Source: Marsupella aquatica
Taxonomy: Eukaryota; Plantae; Marchantiophyta
Assembly: GCA_973895155.1 (NCBI GenBank)
Contig: OZ316898.1
Location: 20,409,292-20,473,291, forward strand
Direction of reading: 5' to 3'
DNA: 64,000 nucleotides
Below, piece by piece: positions 29,232 to 64,000 of the stretch (within the stretch, counting starts at the first letter, position 1; each line of letters opens with the position of its first letter). The notes under the pieces were generated by a model. It saw only the letters and a list, made by a program, of their open reading frames with translations. It was not told the origin of the DNA and did not search any database. The position numbers were made by a program, and so were the translations under genes.

Positions 29232-32200
29232 ATGGAGTTGCCAGTGTTTGATTTGGAGGAGTACCTCTTGGCAACAGGTCGGATACGATTGCAGAAGCAG
29301 AAGCAGCAGGAGGAGGTGGGGGAAGATGGGACTGCAGGAGTAGCAGGAGCTGAGACGGAAGCGACATTGTCGGATGGATTGAGGGAGCTGTGCGAGAAAG
29401 TGGCTAGTTGCCTGAGAGAGTCTGGGGCGTTGGTGATCCGAGACCCCAGATGCACCACTGCTGACAATGACGCCTTCCTTGACATGATGGAGAAGTACTG
29501 GGGTCAAACGGAAGACTTCAAGAGACAGCAAGAACGCCCTGATGCTCACTATCAGGCAGGTCCCTGGCTTTTCTCTTTTTTTCTTCTCGTACCCTATGCC
29601 GCCCTTCTGCGAGGTTGAGATTTAATTCATATTTCTCATATCCGTGTTCAACCGTCTATTTCTGTTGGAGTCGACAATTTGGCAAATCAGAAGTTTGCAT
29701 TTCTTGTCGTTCGTAGAAATTTGTACTCTCTACTAGTTTCGTTTTTTTAAACCAGATGTCGTATGTTTTTTCTGTCTGTTAGTTTGTTTCCCTTTGGACA
29801 AATATCTTATAAGTGCACAGCCACAAATCATCAATTTCACATATCTCTAGTTCTCCGTGTTGCTTTGCAAATTTTTACTCTGACCCTCCTATATCCCGTC
29901 ATGCGGATTCTTGTCCCCACTCTCAGGATTTCCTTTTTTCGCTTCTTAGAATATTTTTATTCAGAATAGGGCCACTCTCTGGTGTATTGTATCTGCTCGG
30001 TGGTCTTTACAGTGACGAGATAGGCAGTGAGCATTCTCTGAGGAGGTGAGTGCAAATGTCCTCGTTAGGAAGCTAACTAAGTGAGAGGAATGCGATAGGA
30101 TGAAACAGGTGGGCGTGACACCTGAAGGACAAGAAACACCAAGGTTTCTATACGACGAGAAGCTGCAGGCACGAATGCGTGAGCTCTCTGAGGATGCTCG
30201 GCCTCTAGCCCCCTCTGGGGCAGACGCCAAGTGGCGCTATATGTGGAGAATCGGTCCTCGTCCAACTGTCACTCGCTTCAAGGTAGGTCATTCTAGCTGG
30301 TGTCGACAGAGTCCAAGATCGTCCCCTGAGGTTTCTGGAAGGTAATGGAAGAGTCGCACGAGAAACGAGAGAGCATTCCCCATCGGAAATACTTTGGACC
30401 ATTTAGACTGGTTGGTTGCATTATGGTCTTGAAAATTTCCCTTATTGTGGCATTTTCCATACTGCAGGAGCTAAATGCAGAAGCTGTTGTGCCCGAAGGC
30501 TTCCCAGAATGGACGGACACTATGGATAAATGGGGTCAGAAGATGCTTTCGGCTGTTGAGGTTTTACTCTTCGTACTTCATCAGAAATTTGTGAAAATGA
30601 TTTTTTTGGCTCTGAAAGGTCTCTTTGTTGGTGAAGAAGAACCAGAGGACCTGAGCTGGATTTTCGAATACATGTTGCTTCTATTTTCCAGGTAGTTGCT
30701 GAAATGATTGCAGAGGGCTTTGGGCTTCCAAAAGCGACTTTTACGTCCTTGATGAAAGAGGTACATAAGTAGCAATTTTATTTGTTTCATCATCAGATAG
30801 ACGGTTCTTCACATTAAGAAAGTGTTTGTTGGATGAGATGTGAGCTAGTTCGACATCCATGGGAAGTAAACGGAAGACTTCATCAACTCAATAGTTGTCC
30901 ACTGAAAGGATGCTTTCTTTTTTGGTGGTGGTGGGTGGGGCGCTGGAAATGGATCAAAATGAACCTGGGCCACAGGAAAATATTTTGCAACTGGGGGTCA
31001 CAGAAAATCAGGATCTTCGGGTGTGAATGACCCATTTTACCAGTTCTGTACGTATTGCTAGAAGCTGCAAAGGTTCAGCTTGGTTTGCCTTCGCTGACTG
31101 AGAAGATTGAATCCGTCGAGTTCGTAGTTGACATTGTTTTGGCGTGTAGGGACCGCACCTCCTGGCTCCTACAGGTAGTGACCTTTCACGGTATGGTATG
31201 AAAGGGACAGTTTTTGCAGGCTACCATTATGATCTCAACTTCTTGACCATACATGGAAGAAGCCGGTTTCCTGGTCTCAATATCTGGTTGAAGGATGGAA
31301 GAAAAGTTGCAGTGAGTGTTCCTGCTGGGTGTCTTTTGCTGCAAGCGGGGAAGGAGGTGATGATCTGGATCTATCAAATTGTTGTTTTTATGGAGTCTTG
31401 AAGTTCCCTCAGTAAGAATTCAGTATATAGTGGCCCTACCGCAGCGATATTGAATATGAACTGAAGGGTGATGACAGTGCAGGAAACTTAAGTCATGGAT
31501 CGAACAGTCTCATCACAGCTCATTCATCTCAGCGCCGCAAAATTGCTCTCTAAGCTGTGATTGTGACTACAGCCATGTGCGTGCTAACTCATTGGAACTT
31601 CCCACAAAGTCCAGTGTCGTGAAAAAATAACAAGCGATTGTGTTGGACGCAGTTGGAGTGGCTGACTGGTGGAGAATGTTTGGCTGGTATGCACGAGGTG
31701 GTTGTGACTGAAAAGACAATGGCAGCGATTGAAGCAGCAAATAAGACTGGGCGCAGCTTGTGGAGAGTTTCCTCCACTGTAAGCTTCTCTCTTCCTTGTA
31801 CGAATAATTTTGCAACGCTGGAAATATTAGCGACCTCTGTGGCACTGCACTACGCCTGGAAAATTCATGCATGCTTTCTGCGCAGAGTATAATGAAGTGT
31901 ATGTGAAGATTCAAGTCTCGGTGGTGATATTCTACTCTTTGTCTTTGCGAGGATGTATTATCAAACGCAGTCATCTATTGTGGTGTTGTCAGGTTTAGTT
32001 TGGGGCTTTGTTATTCCATCTTGAGAACATTATCTATTGCTTTTTGCCTTCGATACATTCAGGTATTCGGGCACATTGCCTACGATGCAGTGTTGGAACC
32101 CCTGGGGCCATTTGCAGAGGCTAAACGAGCTCAAGACTATAGCCCGGTATATGCAGGTGATTATGTAGCATCAGAAATCTCATTAATAAAATTGAAAGGG

Positions 32201-32242
32201 AAGAAGATCTTAAGTGCACAGGTTGTCCCACTCCAATCTTAG
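29232..32242 (+). CDS. 2-oxoglutarate/Fe(II)-dependent oxygenase (At5g48020-like), 7 coding exons, first intron GC-AG
   Basis: Exons 29232-29555, 30109-30282, 30468-30560, 30692-30760, 31150-31356, 31653-31778 and 32063-32242. N-terminal LPVFDL, facial triad GYHYDLNFLT...GMHEV and 2OG-binding WRVSST. Confidence 0.92.
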
Positions 32243-32843
32243 GTGATAAGTGATTCTCTGTAAATAACCTGTAGTCTGAAGCAGAGAGACGCTTAATTAG
32301 ACTTACTTACAAATCAGATGTCTTAGATATGTCTTATACCCGCTGTCAAAATACCGTCTATAGTATAACGGTGCCTTGCAATAGACTGTTCTGAATTAAA
32401 TTATAGAAGAACCCAGAGAAATTCTCTCGGCAAAAAGTAGCAGTCTTTGTTGGGACCATCTTGGTCAATGAGGACCTCTTCGTAAGCAATTGCATTCCGA
32501 AGAGCACTCTTGAGGCCAAGGGTAAATTACTTATGCAGATTTTCTTTCTTGTAATAATAAATTATTCTGTCCATTGTGCGGCTTTTGTCCATTTCTATTC
32601 TTTTACGTCAACAGCAGCTGTTTATTACCGGCCAATTCGCTAGGGGTGCCAAGCCGTGGGATGATAAACCACAAAAGAGCTTCAAAAGGCCCGTCAAATC
32701 TCTGTGAATGGTAGCGGTGACCCGACAACAGGAGGGGGCTACAATGGCGAGGGGTCCATGAGGTCCTCTGGATATCCTCTCTGGTCGAGCTTTGAACAAA
32801 GTGAACATGATGGGATACATTGACGGCCATTGAAAGGTGCATT

Positions 32844-38899: not shown

Positions 38900-41800
38900 T
38901 TACAGCAGCATATTCTTTGGATCTGCCAAATTCTTCGAGAGAGCTTCCAGAAATCGGCCTGCAAAGTATAATCCAGAGTCAGCCACCGTCATGTGATTAA
39001 AAAAATGAAGGATTGTTAAAGATTAATTAGTAACCTCGATCAGTGAAGTACCTCCAATCTGGCCGTTATACACTCTGTTATCAGCTGACAAAGTCAAACC
39101 CATCTTGGTCACAGCGACTGGATGACCACCATCAGCTGACCAATCTGCAGCTTTAACACCCCTACCCACGGCCAAAATACACGCCTGAACAGTGCCATTA
39201 ACACGCGTCAGGCGCCAATTATTAGCCATACATGAGTACGAGCTAAATGTTATCAAACATTTAATAGTCATAATGTTCCCACTGATAAAGTATTCTGCTG
39301 CAACGGAACACAATTCTTGCAGTAAAGATTTGAAAATACGAACGAGAATCGCATGACCTGTGGAGGGTTGATAATTGCACTGAAGCGGTCGACAGCAAAC
39401 ATTCCCAAGTTTGAGATACTGCAACCACACAACGCAGTAACAATTACAAAAGACCCAAGAAACCTACCAAATTTGAACAGCCAAGACAACCCGAGAATCA
39501 CCTACAGGTGACCAGGATATATGAAACAATCTGGTAACTGTGTCCAAAAACTGTCCCGAGCGAAACAATTTCAGGACCAACAGTCCTGGAATGACCATGT
39601 GTGTGTAAGCCTACAAGTGATATACCTGAAAGTGCCACCTTGAAATTCTTGAGGCTTCAGTTTTCCAGTTCGTGCCCTTTCTGCCAGTGATTTGACCTGC
39701 AACGTCTCGCAGCCGTGATTTTCAAAATATTGCAGAGGATGACGTCTCATGCTGAAAAGCTTTTTCAAGTAGCAATGGTTCAGAATGCACACGTATTTCC
39801 TTCAAGACCAATACAACGTAGAGCAAGACCTCACCTCCTTAGATATCTCTGACAGAGATTTCTTATCGGCATTCTTCAAAATTGGGGTCATTAATCCCTG
39901 CCAGGTAACATACTCAACGTGTGAAACCAACTTCTCTATCCTCCAGTGAGATGAAACAGATCCATTCAATGCACAGAATATGGCTGCCGGTTGGGCAACA
40001 AGGAAGCGATTAATTAAATTACCTTATCAGTTGCGACTGCGACACATATATCTATAGAATCATTTAGCGTTATGCCCCCTGACTTCTCATCCCAGGAAGC
40101 TGCAAAAATTACGCATACGAAAATTTCCAGCCCTGCTCAATACTTGTACGCGCTTTCAAATGAAGCCCTCTTAGTGCCAGAATTTGCTAATACTGAACTG
40201 CCGTTCAGATAAACTCGTGGAGAAAAAGGAGTTCGTACATTTCTTCTTTCGATGTAGCTTTGGCACAAAGTTAAGATAATGCATTCTACAATATCCATAC
40301 AGACATATTGAGGGCAAGGTTCCATGTTGGGTTTGGTGATGTACCATTCGCTTCAGGAACATCCCTCAAAGCAAGAGCAGCTGCTTTGATAATGAAGTCA
40401 TTCACAGAGATTGATGTTCCATGCTTCTCTGTAAATCTCAAAGAAGAAGGTTTCAGAGACGAGTTCTCGACCATTTAGCTACATCGTTGGTCAACCTTCA
40501 CTAACGAAACTATTAATAAGACTGCACAATCAACAGCTAAGGGAAGCTTTAGGATAATTTCAACACAGAATAAAGTTCCATACGAGTTACTGGCTAGAGG
40601 AGAAGATGATCCTCAGAGATGAACGTCACCTTTCAGTTCTTTTCGAAGCCCAAGAGTGGCATCCACAATTGCATCTGAGACAAGGACATCAGCCACTTAG
40701 TCCTCAAAGATGAGAACATGAAACCAAAGGGAAATACGCTACCAAACACAGAACTGAAATATCCTCACAGCAATCACGAGCCGAGGTCAGAGTTACTGAT
40801 GTTAAAACTCACCAGTATTAAGATAGAAATGCGGGATTTGCGTTTTGGATTCTAAAAGCCTCTTTGCAATAATCTGCACATGAAACATCATCAATGAGAC
40901 AGCAATAATGTCTACCGACTTTCATTCGAAACCAATCTTAAAGAAGTTGCAAAGAGAAAGCTGAATGTTTCCTATAAATGGAAAATTGAAGATTACTAAC
41001 TCGAATCAAACCAATAAAAATGTTAAAGATACCTTTCGTATCTGGCTGTTAGGTATATCTGTATATGGTCCAGCTTCAGATAGAGGTGCGGCCGCTGTTG
41101 GTGAAGGTGAAGGTGGTGAAGGGCTGGCTTTGACGTCTCGCTTTACAGAAGGTTCTGGACCTGCAGAAATGTCCTTTTGTTTCGGTGGGCCGGATTTCAT
41201 GGCTGACAGAATATCACCTTTCACAAGCATTCCGTTTGGACCTGTACCTGCTACAGAAGATGCATCTAATCCACTCTCAGCCAGATATCTCCTTACAGAT
41301 GGTCCTATTCTATTCTTCTTCGGACCTGCTGCTGCTGCTGGTGGAGGTTCTCTCGAGCTTGCCTCTGAACTTTTTGCCTCGCTGGTAGGGTCAGCCTTCT
41401 TGCTCTCTGATTTTGCAGGTGCTTGACCTGTATAATCCTTAAATTTTCCCACGTCTTCCTCCTCCTCAACCTGCTCGATGAAAATATCTATAAGCTTTAA
41501 TTTGTCATGAACTTTCAACGTGCACAGACCTTATAGGTCAACTCTGACCTACATGCTCCAGCTACTTCCACAGATTCATTTTCCTCCATGTTAGAATCGT
41601 AACTTCCACAGCACTTAAATACGATCAAACTAATATCACCGAGGAATCCAGTTACTTGCATCCACGAAAATTCCAAGCGTCCAACCAATGTGAACCCAAA
41701 ACATCAACGAACATCGGTCTAGCCAAGCTGAACCTGAATTGTTCTACTTTGCAGATGAGAAACTAAATTTAGTACTCTAAAGTGACCTTACCACAACACA

Positions 41801-44800
41801 AAGGGGCTGCCCCACTGGAATATCCTTTGAACCTGCTGGTACAAGAGTTTTTGCCAAATAGCTGCCAAAGACATGACGATTAGAGTCGGTGCCAGCAATA
41901 AATATAAGAAAAACCATTGACTTTGCGTAAAATGGCAACCAGGGTCAAAATGAACTTTTGAAGTTGAGGATACCCGAAGGCTGCTACAGTGTTACCCTTT
42001 CCGTGTATTCCCTACACATCTTGATTACTACAAATCTAACGAATCTTCCTTCAAACGAAGACACAACTACTACAGTAGAGTTATATATACCTTGAAAATT
42101 GCTTTTTCACTTATAATGACGCCAAAAACGCGAACGCCTTCACAGACCGTACTTGACCATGAAGCAACCACTGAGGAAATCAAACCCTAAAATACTTTCC
42201 TCAAGACAGTGGAGTACAGCGGACTTCAAGAATTGTCAATACCAGTAACTTACCCATCTTCCATTGCTTCCATATCCAACGTAGCCTTGTCTGTCTCAAT
42301 TTCGCACAGCACATCTCCTGCGGTAACCTACAGCACATTTTAACACAGCCACTGTTATCTATCTGATATTAAGAAATCGAAGGTAAAGGAGTATTGCTCA
42401 GCGTCCTTGTCCTGGTGACGACTGTCAACCAAATATCAAACAGGTACTGGTCATCGAATCAGAAATGAAATGTCATACCTTTTCGCCTTCATTTTTCTTC
42501 CACTTGAGAAGATTGCCTTGAGTCTGCATAAAAGTTGTAAAATTAGCTGTTTCCTCAAAAGCACCAGGAAAAGGACACTCAGAGAGTTGCATATTTGCCC
42601 ACTGGATACGATGCCTATTCACTACATAACATCAGTTTTATACATCTTCTAAGAAATATCAGGAACACGAAGCTTGATCTCTTTCAAGAAAGGAATGAAT
42701 TGAAAATATACCATCGTTGGCGACAACGCAGGCATAGTAATATTTTGAAAAGGAACATCTGCCATAACCAAAACCCGATTGTTAGGAATCCACGCTTAAA
42801 AAGGCATGGCAGAATTAACAACGAACCCATCAAAATCAAGAAATCAGTGCTGGCTGCAAGTTGAAGGACTTTGATGCTACCAGGGGCAGGTGACGCCGAT
42901 GGAGGAGGTGGTCCTGCTTCCTTTGAGCCACTGCTAGGTTTGCTAATCTCTGACTTTTCTGGTGGCGTTTTAGAAGGTGCACTTGAAGGTGCTTCGCCAT
43001 TGTAGTCTGCAAACTTGGCCACATCATCTTTGTCTTCAACCTGCCATGACAATTATTGCTGTGAGATGAATTCAGCATACATTCGCTAGGGCTTCCAACA
43101 ATACTAACACTTTTCTACATGTCTCGAGGAGAAAAGATCACGAACGCATGCTGGATAGGTCGTAAACTCATCACAATACCACGGCGTTTCTTGCAACAGG
43201 GGCTTTCACCATGGAAAGTTCATAATAGTGAGACTTCCCAGTGCTCGCAGTACAGTACATGATTACCTTGCCAGAACAACTTACTTCACAGGGAGATTTC
43301 CAACTCTTTGTGCTCGTAGCCAAAATTACGACTATTTTTCCTGGACTCGTAAGTCAATGACACAGGATACTGTCACCAATATTAGACCACGTAAAGTAAG
43401 ACTCAACTCATGTAACAATAGACTTACCGTAATACAGACAGGTTGTCCCACTGGGATATCCTTTGTACCTGCTGGTGCTAAAATTTTTGCCAAGTATCTG
43501 CAACACCATGACACCCAACCACGTGTTCACAGTTCAGAAGGCATCCCTGACGAACATCATTCACAGCTGACAGCCATGAACCTTCCGATTGACAGCCGCT
43601 CTGTACAGAATATAGTTCGTGTATGCGTACTTTTTTGAGGGCCAAGACATATTCCAGAGTATGTCACACTAATACAAGAGCGGACGAAACTTCTGCATGG
43701 AACCGGAACAATTGATTGCAGTCATCGCCTCTCGTAGTCTTAACAGCTAGACTTAACTGAGCGTCTGCACTTTTCGGACATCCACCCATTTGTAACTAGG
43801 AATTGTTCTAATTTACAACTCACATGGATTTAGAACGTACATGTTCACGGTGTAAAGTAGAGATCCTAGATAAATTAATTCGCAGCAAACAAGTGCAGTA
43901 ACCATTTAAAAATTGCTGCGGTGCAAATTGTTTCAGCCCATTTAAACTGATTGAAAGCTGAGTTGAAGTTGGCTGAAATAAAACTTTCCGTTGTGAGATG
44001 CATGCCATCTTAAGAGGGAATTAACTTAGTTTGACATTAAGCACGGCGCCCGACCCTAAACGGTTATTTCAGTGCAGGATGTCCTGTCAGAATCCTTTGT
44101 CAATACTAGCGGGAATACTGAAAACCGTAATGAAGACGGGTATGCCACATACCCCCCCAATTTAGTACAATTGAACCTCAATCCCTACCTTACAGCAAAC
44201 CAGCAAATGTTCCTTCGGCGGGAATTAAAACTTATGCATCAAATTCACTCAACATAGGATTGTCAATTGAAGACAACCGTTTTATGAGACATCTCCAAAT
44301 TTAGATCCAGTTTGAGATAAAATGAAAACTTTCAGAACAAGGCTTCTTGATTGACGTTAAGCTCAACTCAGTGACAAATCATACAGCCCCTACTGGATGT
44401 CTCGCATGTTACAGAAAAATGTTCTAAAATAGGACTCCCTGACAGTACAATTCTGCTCGGGAAGCCACCTATTCCCACTTTCAGCGGAGGGGTTGCCTAG
44501 GATATGAGGTCACTTCCGATTGACCAGGGCGAAGTGAGGATATCAGTTGCTTACAAACCGGCCACCAAAGAATAGTTACGACTGATAGAAGAAAATGAAA
44601 GCACAGATGAATGTCATTATGCGGATACCTTCAACTGTCTTTCCATAAACTTTCGAAAACTACTCATATCAGATGAAGAGGGTTTTGCCATTGCGATGAC
44701 AGAAAGACATCAAGTAGGTATTGCGGCTCACACTTCAAGATACTGGGTCTAGGCCTGCAAAGGAAGTCCTGCATGAAGCATAGGAACCACACATTGCTCT

Positions 44801-47800
44801 TTAAGGATTAATCATGGCTGTAAAAACAAAAGCGTCTTTTGAGTTTTATTATATGCCTGTCCAAACTGATGAAAACCACTGCCACTCAGTGCAGCAGCAC
44901 GAAAGGTTTTGGAAGCATCACAGACTGAGGTGCTGGAAGACCTTAACAATTTTACTAATGTTGTCCGAGAATCTCTGGAAACACTGAAGTCAGCTGAATC
45001 AAAGGAGGGACTTATAGACTTGGAAGAAAGGCTTGGATGCTCTTGTACGATTACCTGCAGAAAATAGGGTTGCGGAACTACAAGGTGGGGTCTTCTTTAA
45101 AAACTAGAGATGTGCTGTTCTTATAGGAATCAGCTTTGCCTTTGGGCCAGAGAGACCAAGTCCAGAAGGTCCAAGAATCTACAAACACGTTGATAGAAAT
45201 AGACAAGAGAGATTACATGCAGAATAACCTTGTCCAGTGAGTGAGATTCAGCGTGGCTATCTCCAATCATACGGACCTCAGAAAACGGTAAGAACGGTCA
45301 GCTTTATACATTCTACAATAAGGGTCAACTTGGTATACTTCTACATAGCTTTCTCTTTTCATGTAATCAAATTTGTGAAATTGCAAAACGAAGAGCATAC
45401 GAACTGCCGTTCATGAATCTCTTGCAGTTCTGACTATGATTCTAATGGAGACAGTTCTTACTACATGCAGAAAAGTGGAAGAAAGTTCCTCTCGACATGA
45501 CTTGCCTTTCGAGTCGTTTTAAATACTTGCAGCCAGATTGGGGTTATCGATTATCATTTACGTAACTCGTTCCAAACCATCACTTCGAGCAATACAAGAA
45601 ATAGCATGGGTACAAACCGATTTTTTACAGCCCAAGAATGATATCTAGTATGCTCTAAGCTCCATCCCTCAATCGAAGGAAAGCCTATTTCCACGGTTTG
45701 TTTTCCTGTCCTTTTTAAGTTCAATCTTTTATTCTGAGTGAACCCCACGGACGGGGAGAACCAGCAGGGCAGAAGGCCCCTATATGCAGGACTTTAACTT
45801 GTGACGCGTATCAAAGTGTGCAACGTAAGAGCAGAGATTATTACGTGCAACTCAAGTTAGGATAGAAAGAAGCTTGACTTAATAACATACCCATCTTCCA
45901 TGGCTTCCAAGTCCAATGTGGCCTTGTCCGTCTCAATCTCACAGAGTACATCTCCAGCTGAAACCTGATGTGCACAGGATCGTCAGCTGACATAGTAGAC
46001 AGCGAGAATTGCCTAAATTTCAAATTTAATTATTTACAGCGTTGCGTACATGAAAGTGTTTCAAATATAAAATAAGTGCGTGGAGCACAATACCTTGTCT
46101 CCCTCATTTTTCTTCCATGTGACTATATTGCCTTGTGTCTGAAAATGGTCAGAAGAACTTTGCTTACTGATAACAGTCTTTAAACTTCCACATAAAATTG
46201 ACTTCTTGGCTACGTCGAAGGAACTTATCTTAAGCTACAAAGTCAGATGTAATGAGGCTGATGCAGGAAGAACAGAAGACTTTGATAGCAATATGTAACT
46301 CAACGTGCCAGAATAAGTATTAGTGCATTAAAGCGGTTCTGAAATGCTGGGTGTTATTCTCCATGTCCGATTGAGATTCAACCAACTATAGAAAGGTGAA
46401 CAAGAAAAACATTGCACATTGCAAACGCGTAGGTCTCCTTCTTAAGACATTCATTCAGCACGACATAGGTCACTGGGACGCTTTCATAAAGTTTCCTTGA
46501 CGTAAATGCTTCTAAGACTTTCCATACATATTTCAGGACTCACAGAAACCTGCAAGGCACTTAGTGCAACCACTAGGTTCTGAATGACGAAACACATACC
46601 ATTGTTGGAGACAATGCAGGCATGGTGATTTTCTCGTGAGCAGGCTCTCCTACAACATGCAACATAATGGACGGCAGCCTGTCAGACTTAACTCAGTTGT
46701 AGTTGGATCAAACACTGCCCATTTCACGTGAAAGACAGCCACTCCCCAGTCGCAATCAAGCAAATACGACAGTAAATGTTTGTCTATCCAAAAATAAACT
46801 CATACCGCCTGATGCAAAAGTTCGAGAGAACCCTGGAGCCTGCAAAAGCAAAGCAAAGACTCAGAATGCAGACATTTCAAAAAAATAATTGGTTAAGTCC
46901 ACGACTCCCCAAATGACAGGGCCGAACGGGCTATGGGACGACTGAACTAGAACTGGCCTAAATTGGTCGACTGTCACAGTAATGCTTTATATTACCTTCG
47001 GTCCCAGAGCCGGCCAGTGGACTCCATGGGAGAAAGAACACGAAGCAGAACTGTTCAAAATAGAAAACCAGCACACAAATTAGACAGGGATTTGCAATTA
47101 GTGATGTCAAGCAGGTGCAGTCAAACGCATGCTGCGGTAGGTCACGAGTACAGAAGCATTTGCAGGACAGAATCATCACATATAAATGAAGCTTGTCAGC
47201 CGGCGGTAAATGACGAAGCCTTCTGCCTTATTTTTTAATGATGAGAACGGTAGCTTCATGCTTTACCTTGAATCGATTCCGAATCTCCAAGTTGTATCGT
47301 GACTGCCAAGGAGACTGCATCATTCAATCAAACAAAAGAAACTAGTCTGAGTTTTGGAGATAAATACTTTCATGACCGTTACTTCACTGGAACAACAGCT
47401 ACGGGGACGCTTGAAGTAAATGCTATTGAAGGCAATTATTAAGGAACGTTTCACTGTTACACTGACAAATCCAAGAGGAGATATATTGTGAACAATTTAA
47501 ACATGTTTGTAGGTTAACTTTCGTCTATTCCAGAATCACGTCCTTGAACCAGTTAAACGTTTTATGAGTCCTGATCATGGCATGCATGCACTTTGTTTTC
47601 ATACACTAATTTCAATTCTTCGAAGTACGAATTTGGTAAACCCTTCCAACCTTGTCTGAGTGAAGGCATGAATTGAGTACAAGATTTCTACAGATGTTGT
47701 AAGGGAACAACGTCATGGTTGTAAATGTCACAATAAAAATCTCGCCTACTTGTATTGCATTGAGTCTCGTGGCAATGACAGGAAAGGTGTTTCATAAGGA

Positions 47801-48500
47801 CAGCATTGATCGAATGAAATCAAGTTGGACTAGGGAGTACGTTTTCCAGCATAAGTGTCCTACTCTGGCAGATGCTGATGTCGGAGTGCCTCCTCATGTT
47901 CATCTACGAATCTATTCCCAAGGAATGTAAAGTCATTCAAGTTAAGTTTGTGATCACAGCAATGGAAAGTAGGCTTAGCAAGTAATCGCGAGAATTTCCA
48001 TCTCCAATTCTGCTAAATACCACCGACATAAGACGATACCACCGACATAAGAAGAAACGATCCATACGGATCGAGGGATATTCATTCTCCTGTGGATAGC
48101 TACCCTCTCCACATCCGGATCCACTGACATGGCCACATCTCAAAATCCCGTATAAACTTCCAATCCTGGAGAATTTTCGACGCAACGCCAGATCCAGACG
48201 CATCGACAGAAACACAAAATCTCCCGGGATTGAAATTGGAAGTCCCGGGACAGCAAACAGGAGCAGAAGAACTGACACGGATCGATTGTAACACCGGATT
48301 TGCTCACTCCAGATTTCAAAGACACGAGGAAACGAGAAAAATTAAATTCATTCATTCATTCACCTGAACTGTCCTCGTCCAGCGAGATCACTCAAACTGC
48401 TTGTTCCGTGCACAGGCGCACCGGCGGCCCGAAATGCCCGAGCGAAAACGCGGTTCAGAGGCCGATTGTTGCGGATGCAGGCAGCTGCTGCCATCGCCAT
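38900..48500 (-). CDS. LTA3: Mitochondrial pyruvate dehydrogenase complex E2-family protein, two lipoyl domains (LTA3-like). Catalytic His absent, so possibly E3-binding protein-like
   Basis: ATG at 48500 ([24 protein letters not shown], mitochondrial presequence) and TAA at 38900-38902. Two [12 protein letters not shown]...CEIETDKAT...YLAK lipoyl domains, [12 protein letters not shown]...[14 protein letters not shown], and catalytic-domain blocks [50 protein letters not shown] and [11 protein letters not shown]. About 23 exons; the small exons between 46650 and 48363 are uncertain. Confidence 0.9.
44300..45300 (+). mobile_element. Possible degenerate LINE remnant inside the 2.4-kb E2 intron
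   Basis: The intron 43498-45890 is several-fold longer than its neighbours. The plus strand reads DVLFL*E at ~45109-45129 (resembles the APE endonuclease DxxxxQE motif) and SVAI at ~45250. Otherwise decayed. Confidence 0.25.
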
Positions 48501-63200: not shown

Positions 63201-64000
63201 GAAAACCGCTCCGATGACAGTGCATATCAATGGACATATTGCAAGTCGAAATTTGCTGCCATGTTTTCGAAAATGAGAAGGTATCAACGAGAAGGTATAC
63301 CATGCAACTCCTGTTAATTCGAATAATACTTGAGAACTTCGAGAGACAGGTGGAGTTTTATTGTTGGATGCATTCACAATCACTATTTCTGAATTCGTCC
63401 GCGAACTTAGATGTCACAAATACTCTGCATGTAAGGTGTTCCCGCATGTTTTGAAATGTTGTGCAAGTAGCCGGACCTTTTAAGCAAGAGTTAAATTCCC
63501 ATTCCCATCTTCCTTCCCCATAATCCATTCCATACACAAACTAGGGCTGATCTCAAAGCTTACCATATGCATTTGATCTCTAAGCCGTAAAACATTCAAA
63601 TATCTTCAAATCCTACATTCTCTGTTGCATTTCACAATGTGATGAGCAGCAACCGCTCGACAAACATCATACATGCATGCAGTCCTTCATTGGTACCAAG
63701 GCCTTTAAATACTGAAAGCATGTGCTCAGTTCCAAGATATTGACAAAATATTACAATGGATCGTTGTACACATCTAAAGCTTTCCATATGTTTAGTGGAT
63801 CTATCTAGTACCAGTGAAGTACAAATCATACATAGATTGCCACGCTTCTATGGTACAAGTCAATCTCATCTTCAATCGAGTTTCCAATTCCTCTAAAATA
63901 TATAACTATGAAATTACAATCTCATTGCCAAATATTCTGGTTAATATCACCAGAACATAAATTATAATGAATTAAAAATCGAAAACAAAAATGCGAGGCA

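Follow-up and report, generated by a model that had tools for sequence, protein, structure and literature searches.

A gene in the leafy liverwort Marsupella aquatica (assembly GCA_973895155.1) encodes an E2-type subunit of the mitochondrial PDC (pyruvate dehydrogenase complex) in which the catalytic His of the DHRxxDG acetyltransferase motif is replaced by Asn. It lies on the minus strand at 38900..48500 of a 64,000-nucleotide stretch of contig OZ316898.1 (positions 20,409,292 to 20,473,291), referred to here as the window. On balance, its product is probably a catalytically impaired, lipoyl-bearing core subunit with a predicted role like that of the E3-binding protein (E3BP) of animals. The gene is conserved and under selection, and the same His has been lost repeatedly in its relatives across green plants and algae.

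Within the exon 39184-39052 (minus strand), the motif is encoded at 39082-39062 by GAT AAC AGA GTG TAT AAC GGC, which translates as DNRVYNG, and the AAC codons at 39079-39077 and 39067-39065 place Asn at both the His and the Asp positions, exactly where an earlier interpretation of this DNA from its letters alone (the sequence-only reading) had placed them. According to the literature, every E2 sequence conserves D-H-R, its His acting as the general base (PMC8421416). The catalytic His and Asp expected of a PDC E2 acetyltransferase are both absent from the Marsupella gene, and no second copy of the motif exon with DHR was found within the window. The rest of the catalytic domain is closely kept: among His-keeping E2s of the green lineage and α-proteobacteria, 90 columns show conservation of 93% or more, and the Marsupella protein retains 88 of them, the two deviations being the catalytic His itself and a Cys in DICVAV (codon at 40044..40046, minus strand, a coordinate hand-counted from the exon frame), where His-keeping relatives have Ser. 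Of 17 green-lineage sequences without the His, 8 have Cys or Ala at the same DICVAV position, the Marsupella gene and that of Calypogeia among them, and the change may co-vary with His loss.

The closest relative is a protein of Calypogeia fissa, P0141 (CAM6126923.1), with 88.1% identity over 658 aa and 92% over the last 330 residues. Its motif is also DNRVYNG, as is that of a second C. fissa copy, P0330. The two copies share 97% identity, are encoded on separate contigs (of 3.8 Mb and 24 Mb) and may be homeologues or haplotypes. The C. fissa locus encoding P0141 (L055) has the same exon structure and all seven motif codons identical to Marsupella, with exons 79-98% identical at the DNA level and gene-wide alignments, introns included, at about 70%. 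Its flanks are syntenic with the window, matching the end of a diacylglycerol-kinase gene upstream (63486-63984) and a 2OG-Fe(II) oxygenase-like gene downstream (31894-32536). The diacylglycerol-kinase flank is about 15 kb from the E2 gene in Marsupella and about 2 kb in C. fissa, with extra DNA between the two in the former. Because the C. fissa locus carries the same motif codons, both the His and the Asp replacements are older than the species split and go back to the common ancestor of the two species.

Comparison of the Marsupella gene with L055 (Nei-Gojobori) gave a dS of 0.353 and a dN of 0.053 for the whole gene, i.e. a dN/dS of 0.149. By region, the ratio comes to 0.077 for the catalytic domain, 0.061 for lipoyl domain 1, 0.139 for lipoyl domain 2 and 0.063 for the core of the PSBD (peripheral subunit-binding domain), rising to 0.63 only in the first linker, the fastest-evolving part. 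The comparison, which the sequence-only reading had proposed as a check on pseudogenisation, revealed no sign of it; by this measure the gene is functional and constrained, under purifying selection. That reading had also described the gene as intact, and this was borne out by an open frame, canonical splice sites, the lipoyl Lys of both domains (ETDKA) and a presequence-like N-terminus. It is thus extremely improbable that the missing His reflects a mistake in assembly or sequencing, or a pseudogene in decay: both C. fissa copies share the motif, the L055 locus has the same two AAC codons, GT-AG borders flank each of the 22 introns, the frame is free of stops and frameshifts, and dN/dS is 0.08-0.15. 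For practical purposes, the shared motif and codons exclude assembly error.

The evolutionary position of the gene was resolved with a maximum-likelihood tree of 58 sequences (last 330 residues, LG+C20+F+G4), built without DLAT, PDHX, fungal or plant mono-lipoyl E2 sequences. The Marsupella gene falls in a Viridiplantae clade (99/97) whose order matches the species tree, with chlorophytes and zygnematophytes branching first, then lycophytes, liverworts, mosses, ferns and seed plants, and which includes the angiosperm proteins named 'acetyltransferase component 1'. By this placement, and by the synteny with C. fissa, the gene is a single-locus orthologue of the plant mitochondrial mtE2-1/LTA3 lineage ('E2 component 1'). 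The state of the His position changes nine times over the whole tree, eight times within Viridiplantae (44 rows) and five times within land plants (30 rows), and leaving the motif columns out of the tree alters none of these counts. All five land-plant changes are His to Asn. They comprise Marsupella together with Calypogeia; Riccia sorocarpa, in contrast to R. fluitans, Marchantia paleacea and M. polymorpha, in which His is retained; Selaginella together with Diphasiastrum; one fern transcript cluster; and Stephania cephalantha. In the algae the residue is Asn, Gly, Ala or Tyr (Tyr in Netrium, Ala in Closterium). On this tree, His has been lost at least eight times in the mtE2-1/LTA3 lineage of Viridiplantae. 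Since the lineage loses His repeatedly while the gene is kept, catalysis by this particular subunit looks dispensable, as it is in E3BP. Within Stephania, the motif is DNRVFDE in S. cephalantha (P0262) and DHRVFNG in S. japonica (P0257), a difference that could reflect either a very recent loss or an annotation or sequencing problem.

In the proposed mechanism, the Marsupella protein would form part of the PDC core while itself having little or no acetyltransferase activity. Its lipoyl arms would be acetylated by E1 and reoxidised by E3, its PSBD would tether a peripheral enzyme, and acetyl transfer to CoA would be carried out by putative His-containing E2 subunits. The E2 active site is formed between two subunits, with His and Asp supplied by one and Ser by its neighbour (PMC9681731, PMC8421416); because the site is shared in this way, a His-less subunit in a mixed trimer could still give its neighbour the complementary Ser-side half-site, and such a role would explain the otherwise intact active-site channel. 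The sequence-only reading had gone further in calling the protein a dead structural or E3-recruiting subunit. Loss of the His from a selected, intact gene stands, but 'dead' claims more than the data allow: residual activity is possible because the land-plant replacements are all Asn and 88 of the 90 conserved columns are kept.

A broader proposal is that the di-lipoyl 'E2 component 1' lineage as a whole, in green plants as well as algae, corresponds in function to E3BP: a subunit that bears lipoyl groups and tethers a peripheral enzyme, with its own acetyltransferase activity dispensable and discarded at least eight times, in liverworts, lycophytes, a fern, zygnematophytes and chlorophytes. 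This can be put forward only tentatively. The sequence-only reading had likewise suggested that the LTA3 clade is the plant E3BP equivalent, and the membership of the Marsupella gene in the LTA3 lineage and the recurrent loss of His agree with it. However, 160 of 164 seed-plant orthologues read DHR, in keeping with that reading's statement that Arabidopsis LTA3 keeps DHR, and near-universal retention in seed plants argues against the entire clade being non-catalytic.

The seed-plant count is one of several observations that weigh against an E3BP-like role for the Marsupella protein. By similarity, P0141 passes the NCBIfam equivalog TIGR01349 (598 bits against a cut-off of 445), and among solved structures it matches DLAT at 467 bits and human PDHX at 328 bits. 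The Asp to Asn change proves nothing alone, because the active A. vinelandii E2p has a natural Asn at that position (PMC9681731, PMC8421416). Furthermore, Asn as the only land-plant replacement, with 88 of 90 columns kept, also fits an enzyme that works with Asn. Yeast E2 with the H427N/A changes is reportedly nearly fully active, while the corresponding His mutants of the E. coli and A. vinelandii enzymes are said to be nearly inactive. The main alternative is an ordinary active E2, in which Asn would support thiol-thioester acetyl transfer through proximity and hydrogen bonding as a tolerated active-site variant. Such an explanation is possible, though it seems rather unlikely. It would account for five independent land-plant replacements with no spread of residues, for a catalytic domain in which every other conserved column but one is kept, for a dN/dS there that is typical of an enzyme and for the TIGR01349 equivalog match of P0141. 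Against it stand the description of D-H-R as common to all E2s with His as the general base, the loss of the partner Asp in the Marsupella gene, and the Ala, Gly, Tyr, Arg, Gln, Glu or Cys found in algal and protist relatives, which cannot all be catalytic. The seed plants bear on this explanation too: as His is retained in 160 of 164 orthologues, it is not neutral where it is kept.

A more distant alternative is that the gene belongs to the E3BP/PDHX family by descent, an ancient eukaryotic duplication of E2 and E3BP having given rise to PDHX in animals and to the LTA3 lineage in plants. The tree grouped the plant clade with His-less Amoebozoa (Physarum, DNR) and other protist proteins, apart from α-proteobacterial E2 (99/92), and the PSBD has a hydrophobic residue at the E2 Arg position, as in human E3BP. 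Nonetheless, the deep grouping is unstable, since with the motif columns removed the α-proteobacterial E2 nests among the protist sequences, and the tree contained neither DLAT nor PDHX, nor any fungal or plant mono-lipoyl E2; because the grouping shifted between trees, no claim is made on deep ties to the protist His-less proteins or to α-proteobacterial E2. Many members of the lineage retain His, which points to a catalytic ancestor, and the PSBD is about equally similar to both families. Common descent with PDHX is improbable. The sequence-only reading had linked the gene to protein X, and taken as descent this was not supported, as P0141 is nearer to DLAT (collinear, both lipoyl domains included) than to PDHX. 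That closeness leaves PDHX orthology unsupported, and the Marsupella protein is best regarded as a putative analogue of E3BP, not established as a PDHX orthologue.

His-less E2-like proteins are also encoded outside plants, in Physarum and other eukaryote or metagenome sources (P0086, P0075, P0038, P0077, P0046, P0055, P0071 and P0131). They carry Asn, Cys, Arg, Gln or Glu at the His position and are among the best non-plant matches.

For the PSBD, the sequence-only reading had reported GTGPNGML in place of the usual GRI form. The residues were found as described, in the PSBD core at 41198..41314 (minus strand), but their use as an E3BP-type mark accompanying His loss was not upheld. A hydrophobic residue after GP.G (ML in Marsupella) replaces the GRI Arg throughout the mtE2-1/LTA3 lineage, including members that keep DHR, such as Sphagnum (GPHGML), Marchantia (GPHGML) and Ceratodon (GPRGIL). 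The GML variant is a character of the clade and as such is not coupled to His loss. The domain matches Pfam E3_binding (PF02817) with 40.7 bits against a cut-off of 23.7, and its top matches in the PDB are PSBDs (E 3e-6), with overall similarity that does not discriminate between solved E2 (22.7 bits) and E3BP (22.3 bits) structures. The Arg to Met change at GRI/GML is only suggestive as a pointer to E3 rather than E1 binding.

The gene consists of 23 exons, giving a coding sequence of 2001 nt and 666 aa without an internal stop, and its extent is supported by the exon borders, the open frame and the match to C. fissa. The exon model was built from coordinates, with exons joined only to check the reading frame, to calculate pairwise identity and dN/dS, and to build the tree; homology searches were run on single exons, on an alignment with the exons as separate rows (A5) or with the orthologue P0141. 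The span of 38900-41470 given in the sequence-only reading does cover the PSBD and catalytic part, but the whole gene reaches 48500. All coordinates that follow are on the minus strand. Exon 1 (48364..48500, ATG at 48500), located by tblastn with the N-terminus of P0141, encodes an Arg-rich presequence, the first 45 aa containing six R+K and one D+E. Exons 2-4 (47314-47267, 47050-46996 and 46839-46806; 46806..47314 overall) encode the N-terminal remainder up to FSRTFASGG. Lipoyl domain 1 (43428..46649) is spread over four exons (46649-46600, 46138-46094, 45964-45891 and 43497-43428), with its lipoyl Lys codon, AAG, at 45925-45923. The 2.4-kb intron within it (43498-45890) is conserved in position and length in C. 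fissa, the two introns aligning at about 71% identity along most of their extent. The Ala/Pro/Ser-rich linker 1 exon (42881..43040) is followed by lipoyl domain 2 (41792..42758), again in four exons (42758-42712, 42523-42479, 42327-42254 and 41861-41792), with its AAG Lys codon at 42288-42286. Both ETDKA exons reach the Pfam Biotin_lipoyl cut-off of 22.1 bits, the first (searched as 45964-45893) scoring 24.9. Exon 14 (41033..41470), which includes the Pfam E3_binding match, contains a linker, the PSBD and the first part of the catalytic domain. The catalytic (inner-core) domain continues over nine exons at 38900..40873 (40873-40813, 40674-40630, 40428-40345, 40099-40023, 39897-39835, 39696-39626, 39418-39358, 39184-39052 and 38958-38900), ending in a stop codon at 38902-38900.

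Searched singly, two catalytic-domain exons gave weak matches to Pfam 2-oxoacid_dh, under the 23-bit cut-off, and the catalytic-domain exons as a set align collinearly with the E2 family, making up a complete E2 core. The score of P0141 for the Pfam catalytic-domain family PF00198 is 253 bits, and its match to DLAT is collinear throughout the two lipoyl domains, the PSBD and the core. The AlphaFold model of P0141 has a pLDDT of about 90 in all four domains, and its predicted core superimposes on mammalian E2 cores with a TM of 0.90 (50-51% identity) and on the E3BP model 6h60 with a TM of 0.86.

The first search with the 44-aa motif exon returned mostly repeat-protein noise together with two real moss fragments (P0005 and P0006), which led to three Sphagnum-like, partly spliced metatranscriptome contigs (L001-L003). 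Plant and algal homologues were then retrieved with a piece of L003, followed by the A5 profile. The L001-L003 transcripts, from a JGI metatranscriptome, retain different introns, and gene callers split them into fragments like P0005 and P0006. The exact motif DNA pattern had no match in metagenome contigs, and a protein-guided scan of these contigs found only relatives at 27-39% identity. The moss orthologues from Sphagnum, Ceratodon and Physcomitrium (P0135-P0139, 686-775 aa; also L001:1-1250) have three lipoyl domains; two are present in liverworts, in Selaginella and in Theobroma, the one angiosperm checked.

To our knowledge, the usual description of the plant mitochondrial PDC gives it three genes for E2 and no E3BP or protein X, and full-text literature searches found no description of a plant E3BP or of a His-less plant E2. 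A conserved, selected, His-less member of mtE2-1, with recurrent loss in non-seed plants and green algae, provides a testable case for division of labour in the core. If the E3BP-like role is correct, the two types of plant E2 would be one catalytic and one scaffold, with a bearing on core stoichiometry, kinase docking and the regulation of plant respiration. If it extends to the whole lineage, the plant mitochondrial PDC core would be a mixture of catalytic and non-catalytic subunits like the mammalian one, contrary to the view that protein X is missing. The interest therefore lies less in the single gene than in the recurrent, selectively tolerated loss of His across a green di-lipoyl E2 clade, for which Riccia sorocarpa (Asn) and R. 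fluitans (His), and likewise Calypogeia and Marchantia, offer natural pairs for comparison. Annotation pipelines will call these proteins active E2s, because P0141 passes TIGR01349.

Among known systems, the nearest is mtE2-1/LTA3 of Arabidopsis (At3g52200), which shares the presequence, two lipoyl domains, a PSBD without the GRI Arg and an E2 core, and which has been treated simply as an E2 (PMC11686435); seed-plant members keep DHRxxDG, whereas the Marsupella gene has DNRVYNG. Mammalian DLAT is the best solved-structure match of P0141 and has the same domain order with two lipoyl domains, but it has a Ser566/His620/Asp624 triad (PMC9681731), of which Marsupella carries Asn in place of both His and Asp. 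Fungal protein X (Pdx1/PX) is similar in concept only, as an accessory, non-catalytic, E3-recruiting subunit; it has a small, divergent C-terminal core-binding domain inside the E2 core (PMC7494870, PMC9681731), in contrast to the full E2 catalytic-domain fold predicted for the Marsupella protein. Animal E3BP is distinguished from E2 by the absence of the His (PMC10156792), and the Marsupella gene likewise has its domains in the order of an E2 but no such His in the core domain. Mammalian E3BP (PDHX), which takes the place of E2 in the core (PMC9681731), resembles an E2 paralogue in which one lipoyl domain and a PSBD are joined to a core of E2 fold without the catalytic His, and is the counterpart that the Marsupella protein would most resemble in function, albeit with two lipoyl domains instead of one and with His replaced by Asn instead of Ser.

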